Assembly (NCBI GenBank): GCA_965637545.1
Contig: OZ281501.1
Location: forward strand, 930,001 to 994,000
Source: Phallusia mammillata
Lineage: Eukaryota
DNA: 64,000 bases
Reading direction: 5' to 3'
In this document: piece by piece, positions 147 to 53,045 of the stretch
Layout of the letters: each line of letters opens with the position of its first letter
Numbering within the stretch: position 1 is the stretch's first letter
Notes under the pieces: generated by a model
What the model was told of the DNA's origin: nothing
Database searches by the model: none
What the model saw: the letters and a program-made list of their open reading frames with translations, nothing else
Made by a program: the position numbers and the translations under genes

Positions 147-3100
147 CCAGTCGTTTTCCTGCATGATGCTGCCAAGCGTTGTGTTGTGAACGTATCGAAG
201 CACCTTACTGTCCTTCCTGGTTTTGTCGCTTATCTCTTGCACACAAGGGCTGTAACCGTTCGAACTTTCAATGTTCTCCATCTATTAATACGCAAGTGTC
301 AAGTTATTGGATAAAAGTTATTTGGTTAACAATTGTTAGGCTGTGTCTGAAGCCTAATAAAGGCGAAAGGTATGTTAGTATTTTTGTCAAGCATTTGTTG
401 TGGTGCCTTATTTCTTGCCATTGGAACTTGTGAATATTGTACAAATTTAGATCAATACTATTTAACCTGATGAAGGCGACCTGTATAGGACGTCCAAACG
501 TCGGTACAAAAAAAATCACCAGAAGAGCTCTATAAATTTGATTGTAAGAAGACATGTTGTCAATGCAACGTACCACAGTCCAGCTCAGAGCGGATGTATA
601 GTCGATCTGAACTTGTGTATCGAAAGCGTTTTCTCCAGCGTTGCTCAGATTCACTCTCACGACAATTGGAGTAACCGAAGTTGCTCGGGTCACAACCAAC
701 TTGTTACCGTTGTTGCTCAGATCTTCACTTCGACCGGGTCTGTAAATTGGTTCGTGCATTGTATTACTGATTATACCGTTGTGAATATAATAATATTTCA
801 ACAGGTGCGATTGGAAAGAATTGTAAAAGGTGGTGTTCTACAAGGAACAACGTTTTCACTATTTTTAAAAACAAAAATAATTCTTTCAATATAAGTTTTG
901 GTCTTAATTTAACTACAATTTCTTGGTTACAAAATTTCATGCAGTTAAACAATACACTTTATCTTCTTTGCATTTCTTGACAAAGTGAATGTTGTTTTAA
1001 ATGATGTGACTTGTCACGCAGAGTAGTGCAGTGCTTGTTACTTGTAGCTAAGTTGCAGTTGTGGTTTGTGTGTCTAGCAGCTCGTACTTGGCATAATGGT
1101 ATAAGTTATGAAAGGTGTAAATCATAACGATTTCGAGAATCAATTTACTAAACCTCACGAATATAACTTTTTTCTTTGCATTTCAGAAATTGACGTGACT
1201 TATCACACTGCGTGATGTTGTTTACACTTGTTGGAGTTGTATTGTGTTTGCTTATAGCAACTCGTACTTACAGCATAATGTTGGATGGCAATGTTATTCC
1301 CACAGCAACTTGTAAATCGTAGCTACACACTTTATCAGGTCCACACTTCTTGGAGAACTCGGTCTGGTCGGAAGCCTTATTCGGAATGGATCTAAACAAA
1401 AACATTCAAGCATTTATCTTCAACATCCGTGGATGCAAACTTTAACTATTAAATGTATTACAATTTATGATTTTTATGGAAGCTAACTTTTGGTAAACAT
1501 TTTAAAATTGTCTGCTTGTTTATTGTTTCAGGGTACTTGCTTAGACTTTGTTTAAAACTGTAAACTTTACATGGAACTTATAGCCAATCAAGTAACTATA
1601 TTCAAAACAATAATACTTCGTTGATGCAAATACTATTGACGCAATGCATTTTCTGTTTACCTACATCATCTCTTACGATACATTACGCATGTCTAGGGTA
1701 TCTCATATTTGTGCTCATAAGGTTGTAACATAATATCTAAGTAAACAACTTACGGATCTCTGACTGATGAGAGAGGAAGGCTCTTGTGGGCTTCAGTCAA
1801 ATCGAAAGTCATGTTTACTGCTAAGGGAAATGTGTAGTCCTGAATGTTTTTCTAAAAACAAGAAACAAAATAGTTTATTTAAAGTCACAATAACTAGTCG
1901 CCTTAAAGTCTGCAATCCATTTTGTTATTGAAATATGAAAGTGTACAAATTGCAGTGCTGATCCAATACATAAAACAGAGTCGTGCCATTTAACTCGCAT
2001 ATGCCGTGGTTCATTAGTCCATTGTTATTGGTGTACCGTAAAATTCTTAATCAAAAATGATTTCTGAAGTATATTCATTTATTGTCTATACGGAAGTTCC
2101 ATTTTGTCATGTAACGTGGAAAGACTAAACCAACATTCACGCCTTATATTTTTTCTGTGGCCTACATTCTTCTAGATTTAGAACAGTGGTTCCCAACCAG
2201 GTAGGTTGAGGGGAGGAATTTATTTTTTATTCTTGCTAGAAAAAAATTGTCGCCTAAAATCCTCAGGTGCATTGGTTTGTTTTACATTCTGTATCAAGCG
2301 CACGATTTTTAGCCATACATTTATGTCTACGTGACCTTTGCAAGCTTTTGGAAGTGCGATTGATTGCATGCGCCTGTCGATGATTACAGCGATATGCGGG
2401 CTTCCTGCATTAGTTTGTTATACAGGCGCTTTACTATTTGAACACCAACAGCATGTGTTATACCTTGACGTAGATGAGCCGGCTCCAGCACTGTTCTATG
2501 TCCTTCACCAACGTCACATTTCCACTATGCACTGAGTCGCCGGTTGTAGCGTTCGATGCAGCTCGAAATTCGATCCTGTTCAACACTGAGTCGATTGTTG
2601 TGTTGTAAAGTATTTCTGCAAAGCACGAACTAAGTTAAAACCTACCGTAAAAGTGTGTTACGTCATTGTGGACATATAAAATTGTTTACAGTTTGGATAG
2701 CGTAGTTATTCTTGGTTCTACAGAACACTTGTCTAAGTCACTGGTTAACAAAATGTGGGCCATGGACCAGCAGTAAGCTGTGAAGGCACTTTAAGTTAGC
2801 CATAAAGCTGTTTTAACATGTGCTATTTTATGACATTATATGCTGTCATGTTTACGTAATGGTAAACAGGAGCTTTTGGCCGTACAGGGGTGAATGTTAT
2901 TGTAAAAGCACGTGGGTAAAATAAATATTTGACCCACTGGTTTAGCAAACAGGAGTTTTAATTGTAAAGTATTCTAGAATTTGGCTGGGAAAATTTATTG
3001 GTTTCGACAAAGTATAAATAACAGCACTATTGAATGCCATTGAAACTGCTAAGATCAGGAAGTTTCTCTTAACATACAACGTAGCAAAGACTTTATTACC

Positions 3101-6100
3101 GCAACTATTAACTTAAATAACTGTGTTTACGCGGAGAGTAGATACAATTTATGGTATACTTTCTATGCTGATATTGTAACAAGCCTCGAATGCATTGGAA
3201 GCTGCCAGAGCTCATAAAGTCGGACTCACCCAAATTCGGTTCTACGGATTTTCCTGTGTAAGAGATACACGATGTGATGTTGACGCACTGTCGGTTGGGG
3301 GTGTTGAAACAAGCCAGGATGTCGATGCTAGTTTTGCTGTACGTGACACTGCTGGTGAACTTCACAACCGGTCGTGTCCTGCAAATGCAAGTGTGCTAAT
3401 AATAGGAATGAATCGGTATCAATTTAAGAACGCTATTGTTGAAATTTAAGAGTGGATTGGACAAAGAGGCTAAAAATGGAGTTATATGAATGTAATAATG
3501 AAACTATATACCAGGACCTTTGCTTGACTTTTACATGTCCCTGAGGAATGAATACGGTTCTCACTTTCACTCTTTTAATTAAATAGTTATTTATGAGTTT
3601 TTTGGCAAGTTGCAACGAACCATAAGAAACAAGGACATTTGCATGAGTGATTATTAGTTACCTGAAAATAACAACAGTGTCGCTTTTAGGAGCTCCCACA
3701 GCCACATCCGGGTAATTGTTTCCATCCAAGTCAACTCCGCCTTGCAACGATTGTCCGAAGTATTGCAAGTTGTTGGTTTTTAGTGAGGACGCCAAAATGA
3801 CCTGCCAAACATGTATGCAATGTTAAAGAAAGGATAGAGTACAAAATAACTGCCACATGCAAATATACGCTTTTCCCGCGAATTATTTGCATGCAATTCA
3901 GGTGCTATCTTCCTTATTCTAACTATAGCATATTATGTTTGTTGTTTAAATACTTCTTAGATTAAAATGAGGCATGCACGTTGTGTTGTTGTTTTTTCAG
4001 GAGATTCACATTTTGTACAAAGGACTCTTAATTTTTATGTCGCTTGCGGATAGTGTGTCGTCTAACTTTATTATAGTTCCGTATTCCGTGAGTCGCAAAC
4101 ACTGAAAAAGAAACTCCCTCCTACATTAAAGACAAAGAAAAGGCTCAGTATAAGGAAGTAAAGTTGTGCAAAGACTCCAACCAGCTGAATGGTCGAAACT
4201 GAACTTTATTTATCAAGCAACTGTATAAATAACCCAGCAACTTTTCTATGACACACACACCTGTTTCAGAGCAGTATCGACTCCAGTTGAACTTCCGTGA
4301 TAAACGAAAATTGCTCCTCTGTCGCCTTCGGTCAGGGGGGCACCTATTATTACGTCATTGTAGCCATCGTCATTGAGATCGCCCGCCAGAGCAATGGATG
4401 TTCCGAATCTGCCTCCTGCTCTCTGCTCTCCTGTCAGTTCAATTGGCTGGTAATTCGCTGATGCCTAAAAAATGAGATGTTGAAATGTTATGGATATTCT
4501 GCATGGTTTTATATAAGCTATTACTGCCAGGCATAACGTATAAACCAGTATTACTCTTTCAATTAACCATTTATCCAACTTTATAAGAAATTTGTCTTGC
4601 AATTAGCCATTATCTTGATGAAGGTCTTGCATTGGACGACAAAACATCGATTATTTATAATAAAAACTGCAGGAAGAGCAATATTCGTTTATAATGTATG
4701 GTTTATGTTCCCCAAGATAATTGTAAATACCGACCAAAGTTAAAAGCACTGCAAAGTCAAACAAAAGTGTTAAACATTTTAAACCTAGATGTTGATTGCC
4801 CATTCTTGATGTAAGTATTTAAATTCACTAATCTGTGGATTAGACATCGACCAATTTTGCTCACTGCTCTTAAAGTAATTGTATTTCTGTGATTGCACGA
4901 GACGGAAACAGATCAAACGTTTATCTGTGGAATAAGACTTGCTTAAATTATTCTTTAAAAGTTTGAAACGATTTCGATTCTTCGGCGCTGTTTGATATCT
5001 TTAGATACTGATGATGTCTATACTTAGGTTAAATATATTTATCTACACCCCAAAAAACGTGGATGACTTCAGACTTGTCAAAGTTACCAGTTTGTTAAAA
5101 ATTTAAAACAACACTCCAAAGCTCACCCATCTAGCAACAGAGTTAGAAGGCTGAGAAACGTATACGAAGACGCGACCCTCGTCAAAGTTGTTGCCGATAT
5201 ACAGAGGCGCCCCAACAAGCAAATCATCCTTTGAATCGCCGTTCACGTCCGCACTGAGAATAGTTCCTCCAAAATAACTTCCAAGTTGCTTGTTTTTCAC
5301 CTGTTCGTTGTACTGCGGCCTGATCGTGTGAGAGTTGGTAAAGTTCTTGTTGTCGTCCAGAGTGTTAGGACGGTAAACCACAACCTTAACGACAAAAATG
5401 ATCACATATTCTACATAATCCTTGAGCCAGTACATTATTACAAATTTCTCTTTTGGCAATCGTATTTTTATACCGACGTTTCCTCATTAGAGTAATACAT
5501 AAACTAGAGACAGTGCACAATGTTTCAATCTATAGAAGTCTCATCAGTGCTGCTGGTGACACGACATTGGTCGTATGATCTAATGTAACCATCTTACGGC
5601 CCTCCAGTTTGTTGGGAGTAACAAACTAAAAAGTCACAAGGATAAATTTAGCTCATACGTACGATCTCACGTCACCAGTTGCACAGATGAGACCCTATAG
5701 GTCAAAACAGTGTGCACTGTATGCAGCTGATAACATATTGTTGTTGAATGCAATTGCAAGCCTTCACATAGGACTCAACATTTAATATGAGATTAAATTA
5801 GTTTTCATAACAAATCAGCTAGTTTAAACTTTTAAAACTGCTTTAAAATTTGACCTGAGTTAGTTTTTTTTAAATCAGTTTTGGCCACGTTAAGTTTGCA
5901 ACTACTAAAATGTGAAAACAATTTTGGATACTTAAACGGGTGGTTTGACGTCTGATGGCAAGAGCTCTAATGATCACAATATGAGATCACTTCTGATTAA
6001 TGAGACGTTTTATCGATCTCAATATAGAAACACTGCCGTGTCATTTTACCACGAAAAGCAGCCACAAGAGCATGCAAGGTTATTATGGTAGACATAAACA

Positions 6101-6927
6101 AAGCCAAAGTCACGTTCATGGTTACAATAGAATCTTCGCTTTTTATTTACGGCGATGGCAACAGATACGTGTCTTATTGCTGAAGAACAAAAGCATTGCA
6201 TGTGTCAGTGCAATATAGTACTGCACAACCACAACAGAATAGACACATATGGAGTGCTCCTAACCCTAAGTTATTTGTATTATTTTTGTAGTACAAATGA
6301 TTGTAACTTACAGCTCCTTCCAGAAGATATCGAGGTGCTCCACCTGCAATGTATTCTCCCACTCCTGCTCCATCATAGTAACCTGTTGTCACTGAGTAAC
6401 CTGCGAAAATATAATTTCATTAGCAAAAACAGTTACCCGGAAAATGTGCTTAAATAGCCATTGGTAAAAAGGAAAGAGCCTGATTTATAAATGTGGCGGC
6501 TTCATTTTTGCATGCTGCGACGATTTTATTGTTTTTTAATTGATTTTATTCTCTGCGCATGAAGAAAACGACGGGACGACGCCTGTATGCGTTAAGCCTA
6601 CTATGGATTGCTAGTCCCATTTCAAGTCCGTTGGTTTATTTTTCTTTGCATCAGTTCTTTGACTTTTGAAGTTAGTTTAACCAGTCAAATTCCTTAGTGT
6701 TAAAACAAGACATGTGACCCGAAACAAATGTGACCTGAAAGAGATGCTTGAAAATACTTGTTACATTCCGAATTACCTAAATAAGACTCCTTTGGACGCA
6801 GCGGCAGAACAGAGCGGACTTGATCGAAGTCAGGAATATCAGGGACTTGGTCAGTTGTGGAGCTGTACACTGTGAATGTTCCGGACCAGTCGTAAGCACC
6901 GACTGTTCCAAGAACAAGACGACCACT
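147..6927 (-). CDS. Integrin alpha constant/C-terminal region (beta-propeller blades 3-7, thigh, calf-1; continues beyond position 1)
   Basis: 11 in-frame GT-AG exons: 6777-6927 (SGRLVLGTVGAYDWSG), 6312-6400 (YSV..GGAPRY), 5127-5384 (GSYFGG..DVNGDSKDDLLVGAPLY), 4261-4464 (GRFGTSI..DLNDDGYNDVIIGAP), 3662-3801 (YFGQSL..DLDGNNYPDVAVGAP..FR), 3230-3378 (TRPVV, thigh start), 2464-2615, 1754-1851, 1272-1391 (KCGPDKVCSYDL), 574-739 (NLSNAGENAF), 147-281. Three FG-GAP Ca-binding DxD/NxDG motifs; exon phases chain correctly. TM and GFFKR tail not in window. Confidence 0.95.
5677..5728 (+). ncRNA. Type I hammerhead-ribozyme-like repeat (core-mutated copy; inverted partner at about 5505-5550)
   Basis: Stem I AGTTGCA/TGCAGCT, core CAGATGA (consensus CUGAUGA), stem II GACC-ctata-GGTC, AAAA (consensus GAAA), stem III CAGTG-tg-CACTG, then TA (GUA site). 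Confidence 0.55.
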
Positions 6928-8270
6928 CTATAGAAGCAACAACAAAATACATTTGTTTAGTTGAAAGTTGATACAAGAGTGAAATACTTTTATCAAAACG
7001 TTAACAACTACATAGACTTTATTCACTACACAATAAATCAAATAAAAATCATAAATACATACAATCTCTCAAACACACACACATACACACATATTCAATC
7101 AACACACACACACATTTCCGCCGCTTCGCGTTTCGAAAACCCTAAACAAAATTGACACAGACACCGATAGGATTTTATTTCGCGAAGAACAACGTCGCAA
7201 AATTGTAAAAGTCTTCTTCTTGGAGTCAACCTGCAACAAGCCGTTATTCATTTAAACGCATAAGGTTAATGGACGACCGACATTTGTGCGTCATAACATT
7301 GCGTATGTTACCGAGATGACCAAGTATAGCCACCAAGTATCGATTCACCCCATTATCTGTGACGTCACTTCCGTTGTTGCTCCACCGAAGAAACCTGCGA
7401 CAAGATAAAGAGCAAAATATCATGAATTTGTAATTCCTATAGGCCAGCTTGTACCAAAGTAAAAGGGTTAAAACGTAAAATATAATTGTTGTGTACGGTT
7501 TATCAAGTTAGACAACACAGCCTTGCTGAAAACGAAAACGATTTTTGAAATCAAACCTGATTTTATGTGTAGCCCATTTTCTTTATATTTATCTTGATTC
7601 TTTTTACTAGAACGCTAGAATTGTGTAATAATTTTAAACAAGAGCGCTTGTCTATCGGTTCAAACTTATTTCTTTATGAGAAAAAGTGCTACATTTTGTG
7701 ACCTAAAAACGAGGTTCATTCTTTTTTGATTTTTCTAAGCCACTTTTCAAACCACCATCGCACGTTTCGACAAAATGCGCCACAGGAAAACGGTCAAGAA
7801 TATTGCACTAACTCAAGGCGGTAAGCGGGCCAGACTGTTATGAATCGTTTGTGTTCAAAAACAGCAACGGCAACTATGTTACCATGAAGGGGTTTCCTCT
7901 CTAACCGACGCACGTCACGCAACATAACAACGAGAGGTCAAATAAAGGTCTATATATCGCAGGTTGGGGCTGAGCGGTAGAAAGGTTGCGGTAAAGCGAA
8001 CGGACTTCCAGGCAGCTGCAACAAACACGCAGGACAAATATGGCGTTACGGTCATAGCATCGTGACTGTTATGAATCGTGGTAAAACGGCAACAAATAAT
8101 TTTCTCACTACACGACGTTATTTATAAAACGGTTAAACCAACAATCCTTATTTGGAACCATTCATCGCTTTTTATACACTTGATTAATTATGAAGCATGT
8201 TTATGTAGGAGAATTTAGTTCACGGACTACATATACCGATGTTTGTACTTTAGTTTGCAGTTTGCCAACT

Positions 8271-8967: not shown

Positions 8968-9210
8968 CTTTTTAGTCAGGAGAATTTCATATTGCCCTGT
9001 CAAGAACACTTCAGCGACTTGAACGCGACCCACAAACGTTGATTAGCTGAGCGGGTTGCGTGTTATAAATACACTACAGTAGTGCTGGTTCTACTGTAAC
9101 GCGACTGTCGTTCTGCCGAGCGTTTGTGTGCGCGCTCGCGTCTGCTTGCTTGAAACCGGAAATGACGTGTGGCAAGCTCACGCGCCATGCCTGCTGTTAC
9201 GTCACAATGC
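8968..9210 (-). promoter_or_regulatory. Candidate internal promoter and short non-coding exon inside the variable/constant junction intron
   Basis: CpG-richer patch with ETS/CRE composite CCGGAAATGACGTG (about 9157-9170), TATTTATAA (about 9064-9072) and a consensus donor AAAG|GTAAGT at 8968/8967 not used by any coding exon. Confidence 0.35.
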
Positions 9211-10155: not shown

Positions 10156-13100
10156 CCTATCGACAGTTGACGAGATTCCCGCTTGACATTGCATCAGTTC
10201 ATTAGTCACTCCAGGTTCCGATGTCCCTCCTAAAACAGTTTCAGGCTTAATTTGTGACTTTTCTGACTTTAGGTTCACTGGTGCGATGTTAACAGTCACA
10301 AGTCACAAAAATAACCAGACAAGGACGTGTGAAGTAGCTTGGCCAAAAACAAAACCGCTAAAGTTCATTGGGTTAAGTTCGTTGGTGCAATCTTAGCAGT
10401 CACAGCGCCCAAATCACAAGAAAAGCAAGACACGGACGGACGTGAACTTAATCACAAAACTGCCAGAGAACGTGTGTGTACACACATCAGCGATTGTAAA
10501 CGGGTATTGCATTATATTCCACTATACACATGCTTTCACAGGCAGTTCTGTTTGTCGTATTAACCTGTTTATGCAAAAAAATACATCAAATTTAAAAAAT
10601 ACATCTAATTTAAGAAAATTCAGTGTGAAAAATCACCAAATCTGTTGCTATATTTTACTTGTAAGAAAAGAAGGTCAATAATAATAATAATAAAATCTTA
10701 TATCAATAATAAGAAAAGATTTACTACATCTAAGCGTTTTTCGTTTTTCGTTTTTAATGTGGAGGTAAAGGTCAATGTGAAGGTCATTCGAGTCACCTTC
10801 TAGCTGTTGAACTCCTCTTTGCACTTGAGACACGATTGTTGCCAAATCGTCAAAGTTGTCCACGGTGATCACTTTGTCCTTGTTGTTGCCAGCTATAAGG
10901 ACAAGTTGCTCAATCACATAATTTGCAACGCCCACTGCAAAAGTCTCAACTCCCTCTTGTTTAGCATAGCTCGTCGCGCCTGGGAGTTGTCTGTAAATGT
11001 AAACGAGTAAATTTAGGTAAAGAATCACAAATTTCCATTCTGTTGTGAATCTGAGTATTTGTGACAACTTTTCGTAACGTCAATATTTAAAAGCAAAGAC
11101 TTACTAGGACTATACACGGACTTAAAGAGTAATTTAATCATAAACATAACTGCCAAAGACGTCACTTTACACCCGCACTGATGATGACAACAGTGACTGT
11201 TGAAACGTATGCATGATGCATTCTATATACACCAGTACTTTGGCAGTTATGTTTGTGAATAAAGACTTACTACATACATCAAAGTAATCCTATGCTTTTT
11301 ATTTTGAAATACTCCGCTTAGAGCTCGTATAGTAAAGCGTCTAACGATCAATACATTCTCAAAAAGTTTCAGGAAATAGCAACATCTGCAAAAAATGAAT
11401 TCATCAAATACCAACTCTCTGACAGTTTTGTTTTTGACCAAGCTACTTTCAAGTCCCGTTTTAGCAATATGGCGGCTATGTAATGTGGATACGCACGTTG
11501 AATCGTCAGCATGTCCATCAGTGAGTAAAATCATCACTCTTCTTGCCGTGGGATATCGACTGGTCGGCCCTTTGAAGTCTTCCTTCACTGTTTTGTTTAT
11601 GGCGTGGGCCGTATAAGTTGAAAAACCGTGGTACTGTAGAAAAAGCATCAGATGCAGTTGTGCCATTGCTGTGCATAAAACTATCAAGGAAGTGAAAATC
11701 AATCTTATTAAGGATTTACCTCAATTTGATCAACCTTTTTGTCAAAGTCTTTCTTGTCGGCGAAATTTCCAAGTGGTATTTCCGTCTTTATGTATTTCTG
11801 AACAACCCTGTTTGGATACCAGTATGAATATTGAACCTGCAAAAGCAAAGTATACCAAAACATCATGTTTCTGGTGATTATAGGCAAGAGATCAAGAGAA
11901 ATGAAAATGAAAATTCTATCAAAAGACTAACCATTCATTTACTCAAACATTTTACAGTTACACATTGCCCAATCAACAACCTCAAAATGTCCCAACCATG
12001 TTAATGGACTAGCATTGTTTGAACAAGTATTGTATAATTACGGGTATAAGCACCAAATTGCAAAAAATATAACTACATAAAGCAAACGACAAATCCCTTT
12101 CCAACTTACCACTCCCACTTGAGTATCAGAGGCGATTTCGAATCCATCAGTGACATCCTTCACCCATTTCTTTACTTTTTCAAAACTCGCGTTTGTGACC
12201 GAATGTGATCCGTCCAACACAAACATGAGGTCAATAGGTTTTTCGAAACAACCTGAAACGTCATAAAGCATCATAATGTTGTCAATAACCTTACAATGAT
12301 GGGTAAAGTGACACAACAATGCCGAATTGTTGCGGCTTGTGGTGTACAGCTATGTTGGCTTACTTGCACGACAAGGAACTCTCTTCTGCCACTTAGTGAC
12401 CAGTCGTCCGTCACCGCGCCCCGGAACTTTTTCAGAAAAGTAACAAGCTCCCTCTGCTTTGTAGTTTGAACCACAATCGTGAAGTCTAAGGTGGGCGCAG
12501 GTCTAAAAAAACTTAAGTTTGTCGGCTGCACTGCTTGTTGTATGTCCGAAAGGTTAAAAGAAAAGGAATACCCATAATATTATTACTGATATTTAAACTT
12601 AAATTTTTTTGCCAACTTGACGCTGTAAGCCTGTCACATGGGTTAAACAAAATGTGATAAGTTCAGATATAAGTCAACAGTGTCATGTTCATCCTGCTCA
12701 CTTTTACGACAGCTGTTCAAGAGGCACAAGTTCTAACACAACCAATTTGACCTTTTAGACCAGGGGTGGGGAACCTGGGGCCCGCGGGCCGCATGCGGCC
12801 CGCTTGCCTTTTTAATGTGGCCCGCGTCACAATTTTGTTAAAGTACAGCATAAAACGTACCATAAAAAAAACAATAATAAAATGTTTATGTACAAATATT
12901 TACTTGAAAAGACTTCGACATTTCTACATTTGACGTCAAACTTATTAAAATTGCCACACATTCAACCGCTTGCTGTATTTGTGACGTAACAGTCACTCGA
13001 TTGTCTCTCCTTACAATAACAAATCATTTGCCATGTGGTGTTAGTTTTAAATGGAGCTAGGGTGTTCCAGAAAGAATGCACAGATTTTAGTCGAATTAAG

Positions 13101-35400: not shown

Positions 35401-36107
35401 TGATCAACATTGTTGAAATACAAACCATGCTCTGTATTGTGCTCTATTTTAGGGAAGTATTGATCAATTCGTAATTTTTAATTCGTAATTTTTTCGAGTA
35501 ATTTTCGACTGTAGCGTACTCTACCTTCATTAGCTTCAGGAGACGAAGTTCGTGAGATGATTCCAGTTGTTTGACTTGAACTTGTTGTCTTTGGAGCCCC
35601 AATAGTGATACTAAGGATAAAATAATAATAATATTACCTTTGTTAGTTGCATTCGAATAAGGAATTGACAATGTACATGCCAACGTTGTTGTGTTTTCGC
35701 AATAGCAAGCTGAATTCGACCATGTTGTCAAGTATTAATGTTTACCCCTATATTGTTTACTCTACTTTGAAACATGAAAGTTATCGTTTCACATGGTTTA
35801 TATACTGGGACTTTTTTCGGGGGTAGTTTATTTTTTATTTATGGTGGATAAATGAATCAAGCCAAACCAACAGCTCAACTTGCCTATTTGCACCGATGGT
35901 GAAATCGTATCCGAAATAGGAAGGTTGAGTTGTGTCGCTGCCTCCAGTTGATGAATTCGTTTCCACACGAGGCGTTAAACCTGTGGGCAGCACTGTCGGT
36001 TGAATGAAAGCCATTGTTCCTGGGGCTGTAGCAATGTTAATGCAGTGGATAAAGTGAACGTTGATCGCAAGAAATAAACAAAGAATCCACGTTTCAAAAC
36101 TCTCCAT
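29440..36107 (-). CDS. Integrin alpha head cassette D (no own C-terminal region)
   Basis: Exons 35884-36107 (MESFETWILCLFLAINVHFIHC; GC donor), 35525-35610 (ITIGAP), 34197-34342 (GDAFGQSV), 32935-33052, 32061-32229 (DIMFVLDGSSS), 31039-31117, 30819-30961 (LLTDG), 30382-30490, 29858-29975 (..VSLEG), 29440-29516 (ELGENGFSTHYGR, AGG|GTAAGA phase 0). Confidence 0.9.
32620..32840. repeat. Diverged tandem duplication, 2 x about 110 bp
   Basis: TTAGCATACACACAAGCTC...GAGGGCCACTGTG at 32620 and TTGGCATACACATAAGCTC...GAGGACCACTGTG at 32730. Confidence 0.7.
34431..34943. mobile_element. hAT MITE in cassette D intron 2, containing a nested inverted-repeat element
   Basis: TIR CAGGGGTTCCCAACC...GGTTGGGAACCCCTG; 8-bp TSD CATTAGAC on both sides. 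Confidence 0.92.
34593..34748. mobile_element. Short inverted-repeat element nested in the hAT MITE (second copy at about 11135-11260)
   Basis: About 30-bp inverted termini TAATCATAAACATTACTGCCAAGGTAGTGGTG / CACCACTACCTTGGCAGTAATGTTTATGATTA; a diverged copy in opposite orientation lies in cassette A intron 7. Confidence 0.7.
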
Positions 36108-40447: not shown

Positions 40448-43400
40448 CTTTTTGCTCTCGGATATAGAAAATCCAGTTTCTCCAAGTTTCAGATTATACA
40501 CAGACGTGCTTGATGTTGCTGAGCCACCTAAATATAAACAAAAACTTTAAAACCTCGCTGCAAAAGGGCATTTGATTTTGTAGACATGAAAACAGAATCA
40601 TTTTTATCGCATTTGTAAAGTTCCAACCTCTCTACCACAACTAGTGGATGCACTCTGCATCTGGGTTTTGCCGCTAGGTGATGCATACGAAATGATTTTT
40701 CGTGGTCGCTACCTGCATCACTGTGCAAAACTTGGCCGAATGGTCTGGCGCGCCTGACCCATATACAGACATAAAAAACCTGATCGGGATTCGTCCCCGG
40801 GAGTGTCCTGGGTTCGAACCCCGTGAAAAAACAATATTGTGCAAAATATCCCAGTAATTCACCAGTATCAAAAGCGCAGACCAAAACCACATTTAGTTTC
40901 TAGCGATTGTAACGTTATGTTACTAAACCGTACAATTTGAAGGAACTGATCATTCAACTGATCAACGACTGATCGGGACACTTCACCTGATAACCCATGT
41001 ATTTTCATTGTCCTTGTTGTTTACTCATTCAATAATGGAACTGTGATACTGAAGTGACTATGTCAATAACATTTGACTTGACTTGGCTTGATCATTTGAG
41101 ATCCAGACGAAGCTCATCTTTACTACTACCTATGCAACCCATACAAATTTACCAACATTGTTCAGCAGATTACGAAGACCGTTCACTGTACCTTGACCCT
41201 GCACTCGTATGCCCATGACGAAATAGTTTAATAAACAAGACATGCCCTGAGGGTTGCACCGACCAAGAACACCTGTGGCCTAATTACGATGCCACGAAAA
41301 GCGCCGTTACACCCGTGGCAGTTGGGCACGGTGTTTGTAGCAGCAAATGTCTCAGGAGTAACAAGTAACAGATTTCGAAAACAGTTACAGAATTAGCAAC
41401 ACAGTTTTCAGCACAGAAAAGGCCGTTACTGTTTGTGCGGTTTAGGCTTTTATATTCTGCTAATATATTCCATGTAAAATTATTTGACTGATTTTGTTTC
41501 GACTGACTTGGAAATTTTTTTATACTTAGTTATTTATTGTCATACACAGTGCTTGTTAATGACCATGCTGTCTGTTGGAGGGTCTGAAACTGATCAGTTT
41601 TATCACTCTTAAATTAATTAACAACAAGTTTAAAATCTTTTTACCTTCCAGTGCGACTTTAAAGATTTCCCCGCGAAGTTCGGTGACGATTGCCTGAAGT
41701 TGACCGAAATCAGAAACATTGTAAACTCTTGAAGTGCTGTTGCCTCCGTTTGCGATTACCTGAAGGTTTAAGAGGAGTTTAATTTGACAATAATTTGTTC
41801 ACTGATATAGGGTCAACTCAAGGTAAAGAGATTGTGTGTTTTGTTTACAACACAACTTTCGATAACTTGCTCTTTTCAGAATTTATATGAAAGACCGGAA
41901 GCAGGGTGACAATGAAATGTAGAAAATTAGCAACTCCCCACTAAGTCAATTACTGGAGTTGGAACATGCTACTTTTTACTTCCTGTTCTGTTTTGCATTA
42001 ATATGGAGTTGCAAACAGTGCCATTTCTCTAGCAGATTCTTCAATTGCTTGGTTCGAAGTCACAAACAACCATTAGTATTTACCATGTCCGCTTAAACTC
42101 GCCTTTTTACTGTTTCTATTGCTTTTTGGTTTTTATATTCATTTATTTAAGAATGAAACGAGTTGCTTTCGAAACGTCATGTTTCACACTAATGTACTGG
42201 CTTGTTTTATTTCTGGTTAGAATTTTCAAAACCGTGAGTTGTGTACCTAAATACTTTTGTAATTAAACTTGTAATTTAAGCCTTTTTAAGCAGTTGGGCA
42301 GTTAAACTACACCTTTAATTCATTTTGGTCAATATCTTGTCCAACACCAACAGCAAATGTAGTGATTCCCATTGAGCGGACATAATCAGCTGATGATTGA
42401 ATTAGGTGGTTGTCAGTTGATCTGAAACAAGACTCAAATATAAATTTCTTGATTGCGAAGATATTGTTTCGTGCAGTAGCGTGGAAAATGTATCGGACAA
42501 AGTTGTACTAATTCATGGCAATATATATTTACAACAAGCCCTTTCGATCTTTTACAAACTAAATTAAATACGATTCCCCGAATATACGATATTGATGCAA
42601 GGTTATTTTGAATATCTTTACAGTTATGACATTTACCTTGACATGTAATATCCCTTTACCAACATTTTCGTGCATGCATTGCAGTTTAGTTATTTATGTT
42701 GGATTAAAACGTTAATACTTTGTGGAATTTTCAGTAAAACCGTATGCGGAAGTAGCGGATATTCTTATTGCAGATGGTCCAGTGCTATACGTGGTGTGAT
42801 AATGAATGCGACTGGAGACGATATAAGATGAATAAGTGCCAATGACAGACCGTTTATTATTTGTACTTAATACAATAGGAGATAAACACATGACGGTTTG
42901 GGAACTGTTGGCTTACCTTCCGTCGGTGAGTAATATCATGATTTGGGATGTGCCCGATTTTCCGTATCTCCAAGAGCCTTTGAAATCTTCTACCGTCTTG
43001 TTTAAGGCGTGGGCGGTAAAGGTTTGGGATCCAAGTAGGTCGATTTGAGATACTTTGTTCTGCAACGCAATTTGTATGAAATATTTCGGTTCAGTCATTA
43101 TGTACTAGCTAACACTTTGACTTTTTTACTGAATATACAAATGTTACAAAACAAGCGGAAGATTTATGACTGATTGATAAAACAATTTTAAAATGTAAAC
43201 AAATTTGCAATAAGACTATTCACTTGTACGCCGTTAGAAGTTCCTGTGTTGCATGTTCACTATATGGGGGAAAGATATGTTGCAAAGATTCGCGTTTTTA
43301 TAAACTTAAGGCGTTACGCTACAATAAAGTTTTTCTCTCGTTTGTCTTCTGGTCGCTTTAGCAGATGTACGTTCATATATGATAAAACCCAGGCCATGTT

Positions 43401-46400
43401 AAATATTTACAAAAACCGTTACTGATAAACTGTGACAAATTCAACTTGCTACTTGTGGTAAGTTACTTCCGTGTATTCTATTTTCTGTATACTCCAAACC
43501 TTCTTACGTTATAAATGATTAAACATCCGGTTTCGGAGATTTATCACTTGTTCGATTATTGCCCTGAAACTGACTCGGTTTCGACTTATTCACACTTACA
43601 TTGAAACAAGCACGAGTTTTGCATTCACCAAGAACCACTTCAGTCGAAATTTGACTTTTCTTCTTGCTGTAAACCAAAAATAGCGATTGAAAACCCGATT
43701 TTCACTCATTGTTAATATTATGTGAAAGCAAAAACTCTTAAACAAAACACGCTCACCAACCAAACTATAACGCAAACTTTACATGAAGTGCATGTCGTGT
43801 TGAGATGGAGTATGTGATTCGTTTTTATTGGAGTGTAATGGTTAATGCAACATGTTTGAACCGTTTCAAACCATGACGATTAGTAAAAAGAAACCATTTA
43901 TATTTATAAAAAGAAAGCATTTATGTTTATGTTTACCAAAACAACTTTACAAATACCATGAGGGAGAAGAGAATAAAAACGAATTTCAATTCTAGTGATA
44001 CTTATTCACCCAACAAACAACTATCATAAATTTTTGATTTAATGTGTTTTGCCACTAATATGTTTTATAAACATCACAATATAAAAATTTAAACACCTGT
44101 GGTAGGAATATTGAACGACTCCGATTTGATCATAACCGCTTTCAATGTCGAAGAACGAAGCCATGTCCATGGTCCAGTTTTTAACCACCACGAAATCGTC
44201 ACCAATTGAACCCGACCCGTCCAGAACAAACATGATGTCCAAATTATTGGAACAACCTGTGAAAAAGTTTGTTATATTTTTATCATCGATAGGCGAACAA
44301 CCTTGAATGCGTTAAGGGTCCGCCTTTTGAGCTGCCTGTTTTATTGTTAGTCTGTTGGTTGGATTTTTTGTTTGATTTTTTGGGACTTCGGTGACTTTAG
44401 TTTAGTTTGAACAATTGGAACCACTGGGTTGGAGAAATGCTGTTTAAGTTTCCCGTTCAAGAAAACACAAGCGCCTGAAACAAGAAATAAAATCCACAAA
44501 CTCGCAAACCCAAGATAGTTGCGCTAATAACGCAAATAAATTTCCCACAATCTGTGACAAAAACCTTGTTTACGTAGTGGGGAAACTGGAAGTGATGGAT
44601 TGACGTCACCATCGTGACGAGTTTCTTTATTTTTGCTCTCGCTTGATTTCTCTTTTAGTGATAGATAGAAGGAAGTAAAAACCTTCCTACCTGTTAAGCT
44701 ACTTTGTGGGTCTGCTGTCCAACTTCTGCCACTGTCAGTGCTGCGATAACAAAATCCTTGATTGTGGTTTGCATTCTTGCATTCCTGTGTACGTGTTGCG
44801 GAGCACGCCTGCAAAGTCATCCATAACTTTCACTATTCATGAATAAAGTTTTTTCAAGATACAATCTGGGTTCACCTATATACGGGTCTGGAGTGGAGCC
44901 TTCGACATTTTTGGCCTACAAGTGGTTAATTCTTCAGCCTTTATTCTACATATTTGTCAACATTTTGTAAAGTCACTCGTTTGGAAATGAAAACCGTCAT
45001 TGTAAGTTAGTATTCCAAACTTTTGACACAAAACTTTAGGTATTTGTTGAATTAATCACAGTAAAAAGGTTTTTAGCAACTACTAGTTCAGAATCATAAG
45101 AATTTACAACTATTTTTATTTGTATTCAGAAGGCGAATTATACTTGTGGCCTGACTTCCTTAATTAATTGCTCTATTATTATAAATACGATTGCGACTAT
45201 CAAGCGATGGTAATTTAAATATTTAAACTTTTTTAATTATCCCAGCCAAGAATCTTGAGTGTGTTCGGTTTCCGTTCTAATGGAATAATTAAATTTGACC
45301 AAGAAGATTACGTTTTCTATAAATAAGCGTTAAGGGCTTCCAGATTTTACCAGAAAGTAGGTTTAATAATTGTAACTGTCGAAAGCAAAGCAAACACAAT
45401 TTGCCAACGCTTGATAACATTTGTCAAGTTGCGGTATTAGTAGGCTGTGTTTTAAAATTGACTGTATTTGTTTCACTGCAATGAAGTGGTCCATGGGTTT
45501 ATTTCATTGGAGCTAGTGGCCCATGGCTTAAAACGGGTTGGGAACCACTGCCTTAGGCGACCCCAGACAAATTGTCAGGCAACCCCAGTTGAGGTGGCGA
45601 CCTTCAGGTTGGGAACCGCTGGTATAGAACATGAAGCTTCAGCAGCGAAATGGATCATTCTCACATTCTTTGGAAAATGACACATTTCGCTGTCATAACG
45701 TCATGTCCTAAGTATATTGGGTTGTTTGTTTCTCGTGTGAAACATTTTCGTATAGTATTAGGCAAAATGCATTTCTTGCAAGATGCAGTGCAATTGCCTA
45801 TTTGAATACTATGGAACGGCCAGTGCATTCATCAATAATAATGAATATGGAATAGGAATACCTACACTATACAATAGGATTTAAATACTCACTGTCATAT
45901 ATTCGGAGTATGAGAGACTAAGACCAAACGAATCCCCAGGTTTGGCTTGTGGAGGAGTAACATCCGTACACGATGACTTGTTTGTGTTAAGCAAACTTGC
46001 ATAGTCGCATATAGAGATCCTCCCTGTATAAAACATACTTTTACTGCCCGAAACTTTGTTTCTAACGATTTCAACGTAATCATATGATGGCGTTGTAAAT
46101 ATGAATTGGAATGAAAATTTGGATAAAAACACTGGATTTTAAGGTTTTTTGTAAGTTATCATTCCATTTGAATAAAAAACTGAATATGCATTTTAGGTAA
46201 AATATATTCAACGTAAACAAAACGTTGACGGCTTAATATAGAAGTACAGTGCTCAGTCTGTGCATTGCATCAACTGATTTGTCCATCCCATACACTGAGT
46301 TTCTTTGGACCTGTGATTTTTGCATTATACTGCAAACGGTAAATCAATATATTTACTTGCTAAACTTTAAATTACATTGACAGGGTGTTTAACAGGGCAC

Positions 46401-47338
46401 AAATATTGCTATTTAGTTTCTACGATGAAAGACGAAGTTTTAAAATGTCCTTAAAAGTTAAACTTCCTGATTAACAATTCGAAAGCTGCACGGGTTTGGA
46501 CATGATGTCACATGTTATGCATCATTATAATATTGTTAAGAGCGCCTTGCGTGTCACCAAAGCCAGGATGTAATTGATTGCATTATGGGCTAGTAATACT
46601 ACGAAACAAGTAATAACTTCCGCATACCCGTCGCTCTTTGAACATCTCCGTCATCAGTAGAATTTCCATCACCTGACGCCTTTGGTTGTCCAATGACCAA
46701 TCTGTATATCGGCAAACCTTGTTTAATAGGCCGCATTCATATGGAATTGTGTTGATTGGTGTGATTCGTATCACTTTGTACTAAGAAGCTTGTGTTTGAA
46801 AGTCGTACATTGGGTAAATACAGTAAGGCCTTATCGGTTGACATGTTTTCATACAGTATTACAAAAGACTCTTGACTGTGGCGGTTTATGTTAAACTCTT
46901 CATTCGTCAATGCGTTGATGCCAGTCTTTTAATATCTGTTTCTGCTTCATAAGAGAGATTATGTTTTGCACAGTATGTTATTATTCTGATACAGGCCTCT
47001 CGTATGGGACGTCGAAACGCCGGTTAATTTGTACCAAAACTTTCGCGTTTATTTGTGAGTGTTCGGTTTGAAGTTTAATCACTGTACACGAAAACAGAAG
47101 AGTCGTTGATTCTTTACTTATGGAAGCAAACTAACAACAACTTTTGCCCACAGAAAACTTTAACTTACTTGTCAGTCCCAAATGAGATCTGCTGGCCATA
47201 AAACGTCGATGAAGAGTTCGGAGATACTTTGCTTGTAAGATACGTTAAGGCCCCGGGATCCAGAGCAAGAAATCCCCAACTAACTTGAACTGACAGCATT
47301 CCGATAATGCAGAACCCGAATAAACTTAACTTGTACAT
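40448..47338 (-). CDS. Integrin alpha head cassette E (no own C-terminal region)
   Basis: Exons 47169-47338 (MYKLSLFGFCIIGMLSVQVSWG; missed by the ORF track), 46628-46701 (LVIGQP), 45893-46023 (GDSFGLSL), 44691-44808, 44097-44256 (DIMFVLDGSGS), 43600-43666, 42917-43059 (LLTDG), 42313-42421, 41645-41759 (..VALEG), 40448-40527 (KLGETGFSISESKK, AAG|GTACGT phase 0). Confidence 0.9.
45515..45622. mobile_element. hAT MITE end fragments
   Basis: Two right-end-like termini GGTTGGGAACCACTG and GGTTGGGAACCGCTG about 70 bp apart; related left-end-like CAGTGGTTCCCAACC at about 2184 and GGGGTCGGCAACC at about 28596. Confidence 0.55.
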
Positions 47339-48130: not shown

Positions 48131-48178
48131 TACAGCCCTTTTTAGCAGACAGACGAAAACAAGCACACAAAAACTTAC

Positions 48179-51100
48179 TTTTGCTGAATTCGTCGCGAAT
48201 CCCATTTCACCCAGTTGCAAATCAAACGACGAAGTCTTAGTGTTGGCGCCACCTAATGCAATTCGTTGTGTGAAAACAAACAAATGTTTACTGAGACTTT
48301 ATACCTTACCTTCCAATGTGACCGTCAGAATGGCCGCCTTAAGTTGTCCAACAATCTTCGCAAGATCGGTGAATTCCGACACAGTGAAGACGTTTTTCTT
48401 TGAGTCTTGGTTCCCAGTAGCAATCGTCTGTTAAATAAAAAGTTAAGCGTTACATATAACTGATTCGATTTGTTCAATAGATATGTCTAGTTGTGTATCT
48501 TCTTTTCAGTATTTATGCAACCGGCTGCAACCGAGATAGTTGTTGGTTGCATTCCAACGGCAGAACACACCCAGTATACTTCAAGCATCACTCAAATAAG
48601 TAGAACACATGTCCTAAGGTGTTTTACGAAACCGGTTAACAAGGTACATTTTCTAAAGTGACAATGAAAATAGAACTTTAACTTCGCTTAAACTTGACTT
48701 AACACAGTGCATGGATTAATATGTTTTTGTTGGATTTAAACCCGGGACGTTCCGAAGAAGAAATTCGATCATGTTTGCTTGTGGCCTTAGAACATTTTTT
48801 CTACACATACAAAATACTCGAGAAGAACTTAACCAATTTTTAAAATAATGTACAAACAGTTAGCACTACTAATTAGCTTGGTTAATAACTTAAAGACAGC
48901 GTCATCTAGCGGTTATTCTTACCCTCAGCTCTGTTTCGTTGTAATTTCCAACTCCAATCGCAAATGTGGTAATTCCCCTTGATCTGACGTAATCAGCAGT
49001 TTGTGGCAGGAATTCACCGTCCGAAGAACTAACGATAGAGTTACGAACTTTTTAATTACAAATGGTAAAATAGAAAAATGTAACAGACGATAATTGAGAA
49101 ACCACTATTCTACTTTTGATCTTGAGTTGAAGTGGGTTTAATTCGCCGGGCAAAATCGTAGCAGCACAATTGCGCTAAAATATTCACCAAGCCGGAAATA
49201 GCTGCGCAACGTTCAGACGTTAAAAAGCGCGACAAATTTGAGTGTACAATCGGTGGAGGGATGGTAGGCGCGCTGCAGCAACACCGTCACTGCAAGCTTG
49301 TTGTTATACTTCCAGGAATATTAATCTAACAAGCAAAAGATTGGATAATTGTAGTGTTGGCTTAGTTACAAGTTTTACTGCAATATACAGTAAACTTGAG
49401 TTAAACTGACATGTGCAGCATGCGAGGCAGGCAACGGTGCTTGTGATTCGAATTGCGCTTGGCTCAGCACTGAATTTGTGTAACTCAGTTGGTAGAGCGC
49501 GAGTTCCGGGAAGGCTCGTGGGTTCGAATCCTACCGCAGGCAAAATGTTTTTCTAGCCTACTACGCCTTGCCGTAAGGGAATGCTTGGTGACTGGCTGAT
49601 TCGGTATGACTCCTTTAATTGGCCTGGTGAACTGTAATTTTTTGAACATGTTGCTAATTAATCCAAAACTTACCGTCCGTCGGTGAGTAGAATCATGACT
49701 TTGGTCGTGGTACTAAGTTTGAACCTGTTTGACGATTCGAAATCTATCACGGTCTTGTTTAGCGCATGCGCAGTGTATGTCGTGTAGTTAAACTGATTGA
49801 TCCCATCCACTTTGTTCTGCATACACAAATCACGTTTCAAATTCGGGAAATAACCAAATACTTCGCCCGAAAACACGTTCTGTTGTGTCTGAGACTTTCT
49901 TTAAACGCCAAGAAATCCTTATTCGGTAACGGATTGCCGCTGCACTGAACGGGTTATATTTTTGTTGTGTAGAAATTCATCTATAGTTCAAAAAGTTCGC
50001 TCGTAAAAAATGTACGTAATCCAAACGGTAAAATGTATGAAAAAGGGCGAAACATGTTTGAGCAATGTAAAGACTTTACCAGGCTAACCCACATGAGAAA
50101 CCATATGCTTTGGTTTTATGTTTACTTAATGTTTCGTCTCGCAACTTTTGCCATCTTAAAAAAAATGAAAGGAAGGAAGTTGTTGAAAAATCATGAGAGC
50201 ATGCATTTTAAAATATCGTTATGGGCTGATCTGATTATTACAAAATAAATGAAAAGAATGTAATGCGATTTTTTAAGAAGGGAAAATAATTTCAAATTCA
50301 TGGTTTGACGTATGAAATTGTTAATCCCTCGAATGAAAAACAATTTTCTTACATCAAAGCAAACTCGTGTCCGACAAGATCCAAGCACAACTTCAGTTTT
50401 GATGTATTTCTGTACTTGTCTAAAAAACAAAACAAACATATTATGTGAAAATTAAGGAAATGTTTGATACCATAGCTTGGAGGTGGATTTCAACCGGAAT
50501 AAAATTTATTCTCAAAGAATAAATTCCACATTTTAAAGTTTAGAGCTTCCTAGCTGGATAGATGTGTTCAAGAAGCTTGAGAACTATTTTTATTTGAATT
50601 TGCTAAAGAGTAAACTAACTAAGGACAAAAAAAACTAAAAAACAACTGCCCTAACTGTATTAACAATCTATGTACCTGTTTTCAAAGTAATGTGAATATT
50701 GAACCACTCCAATTCTTGCAAATCCAGATTCCGTACTGAAGTATGAAGCCATCGATTTCGTCCACCGCTTTACAAGGGTAAAGTTTGCTCGTGTAATCGA
50801 ACCCGAACCGTCTAACACGAACATGAGATCCAAATTCCGTTCGCAAATTGAATCTGTGGAAACGTTATTACTATATTTATTATTGGTTATGGTGTTGAAA
50901 TTAACGTCCTGTTTCTGCTACAAAGCATGTATGACTTTTTCGTAACTGTTTGGCATCCTGCTATGGATGGGCGTCTAACTTCATATTAAAACTTTTATTT
51001 AACGCATACATTAGTATACAATTTGGAAAATAAATTGCAAGAACATAAGTAAAACAGTTGCGAGTAAAACAGATGTACAGAACTAAAATGGGCCGAGAAT

Positions 51101-53045
51101 GACATTAAATTAGCAGCCCCAAAAGCACATTTAATTTATAGGCGTTCCCTAATGATTTAAAGGTGTTCTCTTCCCGACTTATATCGCAAGATTTAACACC
51201 TCGGGTATAACGTTGTGAAATAAATCACAGTACGCCAGGCCCATTGAAGGCGCTATACCGAATCAGCCGGTCACCAAGCATTCACCACCATATGGCAAGG
51301 CGTAGGCTAGAAAAATCTAGCCTGCGGTGGGATTCGAACCCACGACAGGAGTTGTGAAATAAGGTTTGTCTTCACTCCAATGTTATCAAATTTATTTTGG
51401 TGAAACACAATTCGTCACCTTTTATCGTAGTTCTTGGATCTGACTTCCAAGTTGATCCTCCAGTCGAGCTTCGGTAACAGAATCCAGGTCTGTACATTAA
51501 AACTCCGCAAGCCATTTCCTTGGTAGGGGAACATGCCTAAATTCACAACTTAAGGTACAACTTTGAAAGAGCTACTTTGATCGGAAACAAGTCGTACGTA
51601 TTTGTTCTTACAAAAATATAATAATACGCACAGTTTGTTGAAAAATCATGTCGTAATAATAATTAAAACAGTTCTTTATGCCGAACTATTCAAATTCTAA
51701 TGGTTGTGATGTGAAGTAAAACATGATTAAGTTTTCGTTATGGTTATGGGATCGAATCCCATCTAGGCTTTCCCGTACGATAGGTTTGAAAGACTGACGT
51801 TGAAACGTATGGCACTGAATGCGGTTTTTATTCACATAAACTTGTTAGAAATAATACCAGTGATGAAACCAGTTTGTGACTCAACACAATTTCACTTACG
51901 CCTAGTTTACCATCCGGTAATACGTCGACGCTTTGTCCGAATGAATCACCAGGTTCAGCGCTGGGTGGAGCTATAGAGCTACACTGAGTATTGTTGAGTA
52001 AGCTTGAAGCTTGACAGGAAACAATGTTTCCCTTCGCCAGGCACTTTTTCTCTAGATGAAAATAAGGATGTGTGTTCATTTAATAATCATCACTTACTAC
52101 CACTGTAATTCCTTTTTAGGTTTCGGGCTATTTTTGCCCCCGTATGACCATTCGTGGACTTGATGAAAGTTTAAACAATATGAAATGAAAAAAGACAATA
52201 TTTGAATTTCGGAAATAGGTTTTGTGTATTACAAATTGTTTGCGGGCTCTCAGTAGTCTTTAAACGACGTTTTTGAGTAACACTGCCGTACAACAACAGC
52301 ATGAGGGGTCCAATACCCTCAAACGTAATTTCTTGACCTATGTGTAGCTGGAAATGGACACAGTTTCTGGCAACTTCTTACCTGTTTCTACTTCCCTGTT
52401 TGTGCACTGGTCTTTCGGATTTTCAGGATTAGTTCGCTTCGGTGCCCCAATCAGAAGCCTAAACACATTATACGTGAATTGGTACAAGGAAAAGAGTTTG
52501 AGGTTTGGGGCTCAAAGCTCATGGCAACCTATTATCTTAACTACTAATTTTTTCTTACTTTTTTACGAAATCGTTTAACAATGACAAATCGGATAAAGAG
52601 AAAATGCAAATATATATAATGACTGATGTCAGAAATTATTTTGCAAACTTGGCTAAGTGTTAAAATGATTGAAATGTGTTAATAAATCTTGCCTCAAAAA
52701 CAGCTATAACTTATTAGCATAATTTCATGTATTCAAAACGGTGGCGTAAAAATTATTATTGTTTTCTACATTCCAACTACATTTTAACACATCATGAAAA
52801 AAATATACTCCAAATTACATCGCTAACCTTTGTTTGCTCATTACAATGTCGTATCCGAAGTAGGCCGGGGAGAGTTGGTTTGAAGAATTGTTATTTCCAC
52901 TTTGTACAGGAAAGTTCTGAGAACTCTGATAAGTTTGTGACCTGACTAGTGTGTAGGTTCCAGGCGTGATGGCCAAATTGGCGGCCAGTATAATGTCTGG
53001 CATCAAGACAGCAAAGAAACACGCTAAAGTGTATTTTAATATCAT
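48179..53045 (-). CDS. Integrin alpha head cassette F (most distal; no own C-terminal region)
   Basis: Exons 52828-53045 (MILKYTLACFFAVLMPDIILAANL), 52382-52458 (LLIGAP), 51900-52051 (GDSFGQSV), 51419-51536, 50676-50853 (DLMFVLDGSGS), 50353-50419, 49674-49816 (LLTDG), 48923-49028, 48310-48427 (..VTLEG), 48179-48252 (QLGEMGFATNSAK, AAA|GTAAGT phase 0). ATG of cassette E is only about 840 bp downstream. Confidence 0.92.
49477..49636 (+). mobile_element. tRNA-derived SINE (most complete copy)
   Basis: Pol III A-box TAACTCAGTTGG and B-box GGTTCGAATCC, followed by a non-tRNA body (GGGAATGCTTGGTGAC.GGCTGATTC) shared with copies at 24839-24960 and 51225-51345. Confidence 0.8.
51225..51345 (-). mobile_element. 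tRNA-derived SINE, 5'-truncated
   Basis: Reverse complement of the same family (GAATCAGCCGGTCACCAAGCATTC...CCTGCGGTGGGATTCGAACCCACG); a B-box-only fragment also lies at 18855-18879. Confidence 0.75.

Follow-up and report, generated by a model that had tools for sequence, protein, structure and literature searches.

How many integrin alpha chains can be made from a locus that has one body and six different heads? The window analysed here (the whole stretch of 64,000 nucleotides (nt) from contig OZ281501.1 of Phallusia mammillata; no N runs, GC content even at ~38 %) raises this question directly: between 10 and 53 kb it carries six sets of paralogous minus-strand exons, the cassettes A to F, each encoding the head of a predicted integrin alpha chain with an intact reading frame, and downstream of them on the same strand lie the exons of an integrin body that occurs once in the window. 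We believe that this is very probably a single integrin alpha locus, in which six alternative 5' heads share one body to give up to six alpha chains. Assembled RNA joins two of the heads, D and F, to the first exon of the body.

Six heads upstream of one body

The array emerges from a self-BLAST in which the stop-free stretches of the window were compared all against all: the six sets of head exons match one another, and the exons below 6.9 kb have no partner elsewhere in the window. The arrangement is thus one of tandem, paralogous variable units on a single strand, upstream of one constant region. Between the last head exon of one cassette and the ATG of the next lie 840, 4340, 2774, 1144 and 1383 nt, in agreement with the 0.84-4.3 kb given in the original prediction (an earlier reading of this DNA from its letters), and the part of the body inside the window takes 6.8 kb, compared with 4340 nt for the largest of these gaps. 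Both the self-BLAST and the curated exon models also uphold the claim that there are six tandem minus-strand head units, each with its own ATG and signal peptide. On the same strand upstream of cassette F are exons of a cadherin gene (cadherin repeats at 60770-62465 (-), Pfam PF00028, E=4e-17 and 0.003), so F is the first cassette and the array is complete at its 5' end.

Each head encodes a start codon, a signal peptide, blades 1 and 2 of the beta-propeller, a complete alphaI (VWA) domain and the first strand of blade 3, the blade being picked up again after the inserted domain in the last head exon and constant exon 1. The six first exons have in common a hydrophobic leader followed by an FNL-like motif and then an FG-type motif (FFGY, SFYG, YFGH, YFGY, FYGQ and YFGY), and a GAP-type motif is present in the second exon found of every cassette. 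Pfam VWA matches on the head exons (F exon 5, E=1e-10; D exon 7; A exon 8) cover profile positions 1-48, 67-113 and 124-174, and the nearest matches of the first VWA exon are the A domains of collagen VI and integrin alpha-M. The metal-ion-dependent adhesion site (MIDAS), DxSxS..T..D, is intact in all six heads (DGSxS, the T of TYTAHA and the D of LLTDG), as are the conserved cysteines. The internal-ligand motif, LEG in five of the six and LES in C, sits exactly at the phase-1 intron that precedes the last head exon; the corresponding alphaI glutamate motif (I/L-E-G-T, after the last alphaI helix) is described in PMC12422189. Finally, the last head exon stops at the homologous residue in every cassette, with a phase-0 end directly before GT, at 10156, 16414, 21768, 29440, 40448 and 48179, exactly the donor positions originally predicted.

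The heads fall into two subfamilies, A-C and D-F, with an amino-acid identity of 43-49 % inside a subfamily and 28-35 % across (28-49 % overall). DNA similarity between cassettes is confined to exon cores and dispersed repeats, and the introns have no remaining similarity. That frames, MIDAS and splice sites are kept at this degree of divergence, with so little DNA similarity left, argues that the reading frames of all six heads are maintained by selection.

The constant exons in 147..6400 (-) encode blades 4-7, the thigh and the start of the calf; the gene continues past the start of the window, and the membrane anchor and tail of the integrin lie outside it. Pfam finds three FG-GAP (Ca-type) repeats on the body exons, together with single-exon matches to Integrin_A_Ig_1 (E=1.5e-5, 25.9 bits, slightly below the curated cut-off of 26) and Integrin_A_Ig_2 (E=0.0026, under its cut-off), and in a PDB search the exon stretch 4249-4464 resembles integrin alpha-V residues 322-390 (E=2e-21). 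Taken together, the VWA matches of the heads, the FG-GAP and Ig matches of the body and the alpha-V match identify the predicted product as an integrin alpha chain with an inserted alphaI domain. In a protein search with the FG-GAP exon 5139-5384, the best 150 matches were long multi-repeat proteins with 11-32 matched stretches, and there were no integrins among them; for the constant-exon-1 stretch and A exon 7 no homologue of 0.55-1.75 relative length was found, longer relatives being outside the scope of that search. The translation of 6777-6927 agrees with its earlier identification as the next integrin exon, in phase 0, and its acceptor is strong, with a long pyrimidine tract and TAG|AGT at 6927.

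That the later integrin exons occur only once had been read from the letters, and tblastn now confirms it for the window: nine body-exon peptides searched against the rest of it at E<=10 gave only noise, with no second body copy and no body relics between the cassettes. Could the single body be an artefact of assembly, near-identical bodies having been collapsed where each head really belongs to an ordinary integrin gene of its own, one of six in tandem like Ciona alpha5-8? In Ciona, four alphaA-domain integrin genes, each complete with 26-27 exons, do stand in tandem (PMC1145181). We nevertheless consider a collapse very unlikely, because bodies as old as heads that are 28-49 % identical would be too diverged to collapse, the cassettes are contiguous over their short gaps without N runs or body relics, and body contigs from four RNA runs (see below) carry no variant letters across the body exons.

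RNA across the head-body junction and the proposed choice of a head

Two studies contributed eight RNA-like runs of this organism, and these contain 10-16 % of the words in 301-10300, roughly the exonic share of that stretch. Logan contigs of four of them, X1 and X2 (study P1) and X5 and X6 (study P2), were compared with 4301-10300. All four runs have contigs of 2.8-3.3 kb spliced with CT..AC ends across 4464|5127-5384|6312-6400|6777-6927, and these joints identify the contigs as processed minus-strand RNA. The body mRNA is longer than 3.1 kb, the body contig reaching ~2.5 kb of mRNA past 4301.

At the other end, the body contigs stop at 6927 in four of four runs. Here the X1 contig has 29 extra letters, an exact match to 29441-29469, the end of cassette D, while the 255 extra letters of an X2 contig begin with 30 that are identical to 48179-48208, where cassette F ends. 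Both joints to 6927, from the D donor at 29440 and from the F donor at 48179, are exact at donor and acceptor, in frame and GT/AG. They span 22,512 nt (D) and 41,251 nt (F) and skip 26 and 46 annotated exons, respectively. The F contig therefore bears out the long-range splicing of up to ~41 kb that had been proposed; of the individual junctions to 6927, those from D and F were recovered, and that from A (donor 10156) had no contig in the four runs. The cassette at the junction differs between samples of one study, D in X1 and F in X2, a mere hint of cell-specific or stochastic choice, since contigs give no measure of usage.

It might be objected that no real RNA underlies the D and F junctions, the contigs being chimeras from the assembler or from template switching: each junction is carried by one contig, and the X1 overhang is just 29 letters long. 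We find this scarcely credible. At both junctions the break coincides to the letter with the GT donor and AG acceptor that had been predicted, and the frame continues across it. The two exons have no 30-mer in common on which a de Bruijn assembler could go astray, as many as 255 letters overhang in X2, and two samples gave two different cassettes.

The reading of the locus as alternative heads on one body, as first suggested, is thus largely supported, the evidence being the D and F junction contigs. We propose that each transcript would contain one cassette, whose phase-0 last exon would be joined to constant exon 1 at 6927, any cassettes between the chosen head and the body being left out. 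The resulting alpha chains would differ in the ligand-binding head and blades 1-2, with identical blades 3-7 and an identical leg. Cassettes A, B, C and E would be used in the same way as D and F, every cassette would have a separate promoter, joining would occur by cis splicing of a long primary transcript, and the heads would presumably differ in ligand. Exon 2 starts in phase 2, so a phase-0 last head exon mis-joined to it would shift the frame and give a non-productive product.

Several points weigh against this scheme. Junction RNA comes from two of the six cassettes, in two samples of one study, and consists of assembled contigs, not reads, which give neither abundance nor full-length structure; the RNA label of the runs is itself a guess ("RNA?"), though GT-AG joints such as these are a mark of processed RNA. 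That the body is unique applies to the 64,000-nt window. Every downstream cassette has 7-9 internal exons with acceptors, and a cis transcript from F must skip 41 internal exons (46 including the five first exons). Between the intron preceding 6927 and those that follow the six donors, blastn-short and a G:U-tolerant k-mer scan detected no docking or selector complementarity above shuffles, weak or structured pairings being beyond their reach, and a search for a shared promoter motif upstream of the six ATGs likewise yielded nothing above shuffles; both are weak negatives from one genome. Lastly, no contig lies on 10101-10300, the region of the last exon of cassette A, in the four runs, bearing in mind that contigs show presence, not absence.

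In the same docking search, RNAduplex z-scores ranged from -2.4 to +0.8 and are uninformative, since the duplexes ran over whole sequences. UG-rich tracts after the donors are not a common feature; the only clear (UG)n-like tract is at 7072-7119 in the minus RNA, ~150 nt upstream of the constant-exon acceptor, and 7064-7098 is masked as repeat.

The missing A contig leads to the question of whether all six cassettes are in use. The contigs, compared as they were with 4301-10300, yielded no RNA evidence for B, C and E, C has no identifiable exon 2, and the last donors of C (GTTTGT) and B (GTGGGT) are the weaker ones. One could argue from this that only some cassettes are functional (D, F and perhaps others), with A, B, C or E being silent relics or secreted head-only fragments with their own poly(A) sites. 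This we regard as improbable. Apart from the asymmetry of contig evidence noted above, in all six cassettes the stop-free frames have stayed long, and MIDAS, the cysteines, the signal peptide and the phase-0 donor are conserved, whereas no similarity is left between the introns; a relic of such age would be full of stops.

A further RNA bears on how a head is joined. In X1, X2 and X5, a headless transcript starts at exon 0a and is spliced to exon 0b (joint 7392/8966, cut +2), from which it runs into constant exon 1 without using the acceptor at 6927; X2 record 8 spans 6899-7392 unbroken, and X1 records 2 and 3 also lie here. The contigs start exactly at 9107 in two runs and at 9091 in one, there are no loose letters at 9107, and the two bases preceding it are not AG; this is the only 5' end seen at the locus. 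The word depth of this RNA is 1/4-1/3 of that of the body contig in the three runs, in which other introns are empty. It has no reading frame into the body, an in-frame TAG being present at the acceptor, and Met is absent from the first 166 body residues. The body may thus have its own promoter near 9107, and the headless RNA is probably non-coding; it may be a regulatory or sterile transcript, or the acceptor substrate for trans-splicing. CRE-like (cAMP response element) TGACGTAA and TGACGTCA sites are found near its 5' end, in the 6928-9107 region.

With trans-splicing, the same products would arise from short cassette units and a body transcribed from the promoter near 9.1 kb, the last donor of a cassette being joined to 6927 in trans. 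Such a route fits a headless RNA that begins at 9107 and reads past an unused acceptor at 6927, and under it up to 41 internal exons would no longer have to be skipped. An active machinery for spliced-leader trans-splicing exists in tunicates, and trans-splicing is known for Drosophila mod(mdg4) and lola. Multi-exon 5' cassettes are trans-spliced to constant exons in sDscam (PMC9258826). Set against this, no complementary docking or selector elements were found, the headless RNA could equally be a sterile or regulatory RNA, and cis splicing over 20-40 kb is ordinary in animals, so we treat joining in trans as possible but doubtful. More specific still, and in our judgement a long shot, would be that each blood cell picks one or a few heads, which are joined by genic trans-splicing to body pre-mRNA from the promoter near 9.1 kb. 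If true, an adhesion or innate immune receptor would here be diversified in the manner of protocadherins or sDscam, in an invertebrate that is likely to be closely related to vertebrates.

Exon models and repeats

The final head models were made by homology-anchored curation, in place of automatic exon chaining, which gave micro-exons and "exons" derived from short interspersed nuclear elements (SINEs). The curated chains of all six cassettes are stop-free, with AG/GT at each junction and a phase-0 end, and comprise 8-10 exons, so the frames are intact throughout, as had been claimed, and against the earlier count of 9-10 exons per cassette, 8 were found in C. Table 1 lists the coordinates.

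Table 1. Coordinates of the head cassettes, constant exons and headless 5' exons (positions in the window)
Feature	Extent	Strand	Exons	Remarks
Cassette F	48179..53045	-	52828-53045, 52392-52458, 51900-52049, 51419-51536, 50676-50853, 50353-50419, 49674-49816, 48923-49028, 48310-48427, 48179-48252	10 exons, 413 amino acids (aa); 5'-most
Cassette E	40448..47338	-	47169-47338, 46628-46701, 45893-46023, 44691-44808, 44097-44256, 43594-43666, 42917-43059, 42313-42421, 41645-41759, 40448-40527	10 exons, 391 aa; first exon from 47338
Cassette D	29440..36107	-	35872-36107, 35525-35610, 34197-34342, 32935-33052, 32061-32229, 31039-31117, 30819-30961, 30382-30490, 29858-29975, 29440-29516	10 exons, 427 aa
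Cassette C	21768..26665	-	26463-26665, 25308-25398, 24987-25107, 24256-24398, 23588-23713, 23059-23195, 22326-22516, 21768-21838	8 exons found, 361 aa
Cassette B	16414..20623	-	20481-20623, 20332-20396, 19881-19999, 19306-19402, 18661-18803, 18042-18158, 17535-17671, 16952-17145, 16414-16484	9 exons, 362 aa
Cassette A	10156..15030	-	14810-15030, 14392-14529, 13736-13856, 12364-12502, 12110-12252, 11720-11836, 11497-11633, 10797-10990, 10156-10229	9 exons, 428 aa; nearest the body
Exon 0a	8968..9107	-		Headless 5' exon; GTAAGT..CAG splice to 7394; X1, X2, X5
Exon 0b	6928..7394	-		Contiguous RNA into constant exon 1; acceptor at 6927 unused
Constant exon 1	6777..6927	-		Phase-0 start; remainder of blade 3; shared acceptor; limits from RNA contigs
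RNA-defined constant exons		-	6312-6400, 5127-5384, ~4261-4464	Joints with CT..AC ends, four runs
Approximate constant exons		-	3661-3780, 3240-3380, 2480-2625, 1295-1400, ~520-690	

Exon lengths with conserved phases set the two subfamilies apart, with 143, 117/126, 137, 194/191 and 74/71 nt in A-C and 118, 143, 109/106, 118/115 and 77/80/74 nt in D-F, and two intron positions differ between them. The 5' exons of cassette A lie at 13.7-15.0 kb: signal peptide and FNL (15030), the GAP exon at ~14.4-14.5 kb and a blade-2 exon at ~13.8 kb. A YYGYSF-like stretch at 12570 was rejected as part of this cassette, stops preceding it. The limits of exons 1-3, chiefly in C and F, were set by homology and splice-site choice and are the least certain part of the models; the exon 2/3 boundary of F is uncertain, and a short "GAP" exon 2 may have been missed in the model of C. 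Automatic annotation of such loci will yield truncated "head-only" integrins or one arbitrary isoform.

The introns contain a variety of repeats. tRNA-like SINE copies, which translate into false exons, are present at 24839-24943, 49517-49618 and 51237-51344, in introns of C and F, and at 24435-24585, also in an intron of C, a 17-nt tandem repeat (8.9 copies, 97 % matches) gives spurious long frames in three phases. Repeats are shared between introns of A and D (11109-11263 and 34591-34774) and of B and D (17334-17481 and 31298-31450), with 78-96 % identity and some of them inverted. A GC-rich element is common to 12720-12899, in an intron of A, and 58075-58203, upstream of F, and has a palindromic GCGGGCCGCATGCGGCCCGC core at 12790-12830. 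In the body, many contigs of 31-38 nt from the four runs pile up at 5696-5728, within an intron, and some of them have loose ends without a counterpart in the window; the pile-up is probably a fragment of a repeat expressed elsewhere.

Comparison with known systems

Known alternative splicing of integrins touches small extracellular exons or the tail, not the whole head, and to our knowledge descriptions of integrin diversity have always assigned a single gene to each chain, with small splice variants in addition. We found no description of clustered or shared-body integrin heads in the literature searched, so that the original prediction of an organisation undescribed for integrins holds to that extent, although the architecture itself is known from sDscam-beta (see below). 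Like vertebrate alphaM, alphaX and alphaL and Halocynthia alphaHr1, the predicted chains have a VWA domain between blades 2 and 3 with MIDAS and internal-ligand glutamate, and like the leukocyte alphaI integrins and alphaHr1 they have three Ca-binding FG-GAP blades and a thigh/calf leg. The difference lies in the gene, since those integrins are each encoded as one gene per chain.

Clustered protocadherins (alpha and gamma) and UGT1A offer a parallel; in these, each variable unit is one exon without an acceptor and has its own promoter. Tandem variable 5' units are joined to one constant set there as here, the intervening units being skipped, but in protocadherins and UGT1A the skipping needs no special mechanism, whereas here there are 7-9 internal acceptors in each downstream cassette. 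By what means dozens of internal exons, all of them competent, come to be skipped becomes a directly testable question.

According to the literature, integrin alpha chains with an alphaI insertion occur in tunicates and vertebrates only (PMC4237329). Ciona possesses eight alphaA-domain integrins, of which four are the complete tandem genes mentioned above, with expression in blood cells, and alphaHr1 of Halocynthia is a haemocyte protein and proposed complement receptor (PMC1145181). The Phallusia locus resembles Ci_alpha5-8 of Ciona intestinalis, members of the ascidian alphaA-domain clade, in that alphaI integrins are multiplied in tandem, and the exons following the junction are of matching size (87-90/256 nt in Ciona, 89/258 nt here). 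Unlike Ci_alpha5-8, published as complete genes, only the first 8-10 exons are multiplied here and the rest is shared. By analogy with the ascidian alphaI integrins, which are found on blood cells and are proposed complement receptors (PMC1145181), the heads would most likely act in haemocyte adhesion or recognition, making the six-head locus a candidate innate recognition repertoire.

The architecture has its nearest counterpart in chelicerate sDscam-beta, in which tandem variable 5' cassettes, generally of four exons and usually with their own promoter, precede shared constant 3' exons, and in mites cassette choice is made by docking-site/selector RNA pairing, with trans-splicing in addition (PMC9258826). 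The earlier statement that known variable units are single exons was therefore too strong. In both systems tandem multi-exon 5' cassettes are placed on shared 3' exons, and the variable part is the recognition end of a surface adhesion receptor. The cassettes themselves differ, with ~four exons and two Ig domains in sDscam-beta as opposed to 8-10 exons and 360-430 aa here, encoding part of a beta-propeller and an inserted VWA domain; docking/selector pairing and proven trans-splicing belong to sDscam, and the integrin locus is of another protein family and phylum.

What is new here, then, is that the arrangement occurs in an integrin, that the cassettes are so large and that the exchanged unit takes in part of the propeller; the variable-5'/constant-3' architecture itself is known. 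An exchange of the whole ligand-binding head (alphaI and two blades) on a fixed body would amount to a natural domain-swap series for integrins, from which it could be read which parts of the propeller co-vary with alphaI and which contact the beta chain. The locus would add a fourth, unrelated receptor family to the variable-5'/constant-3' clusters, with the largest cassettes of those compared.

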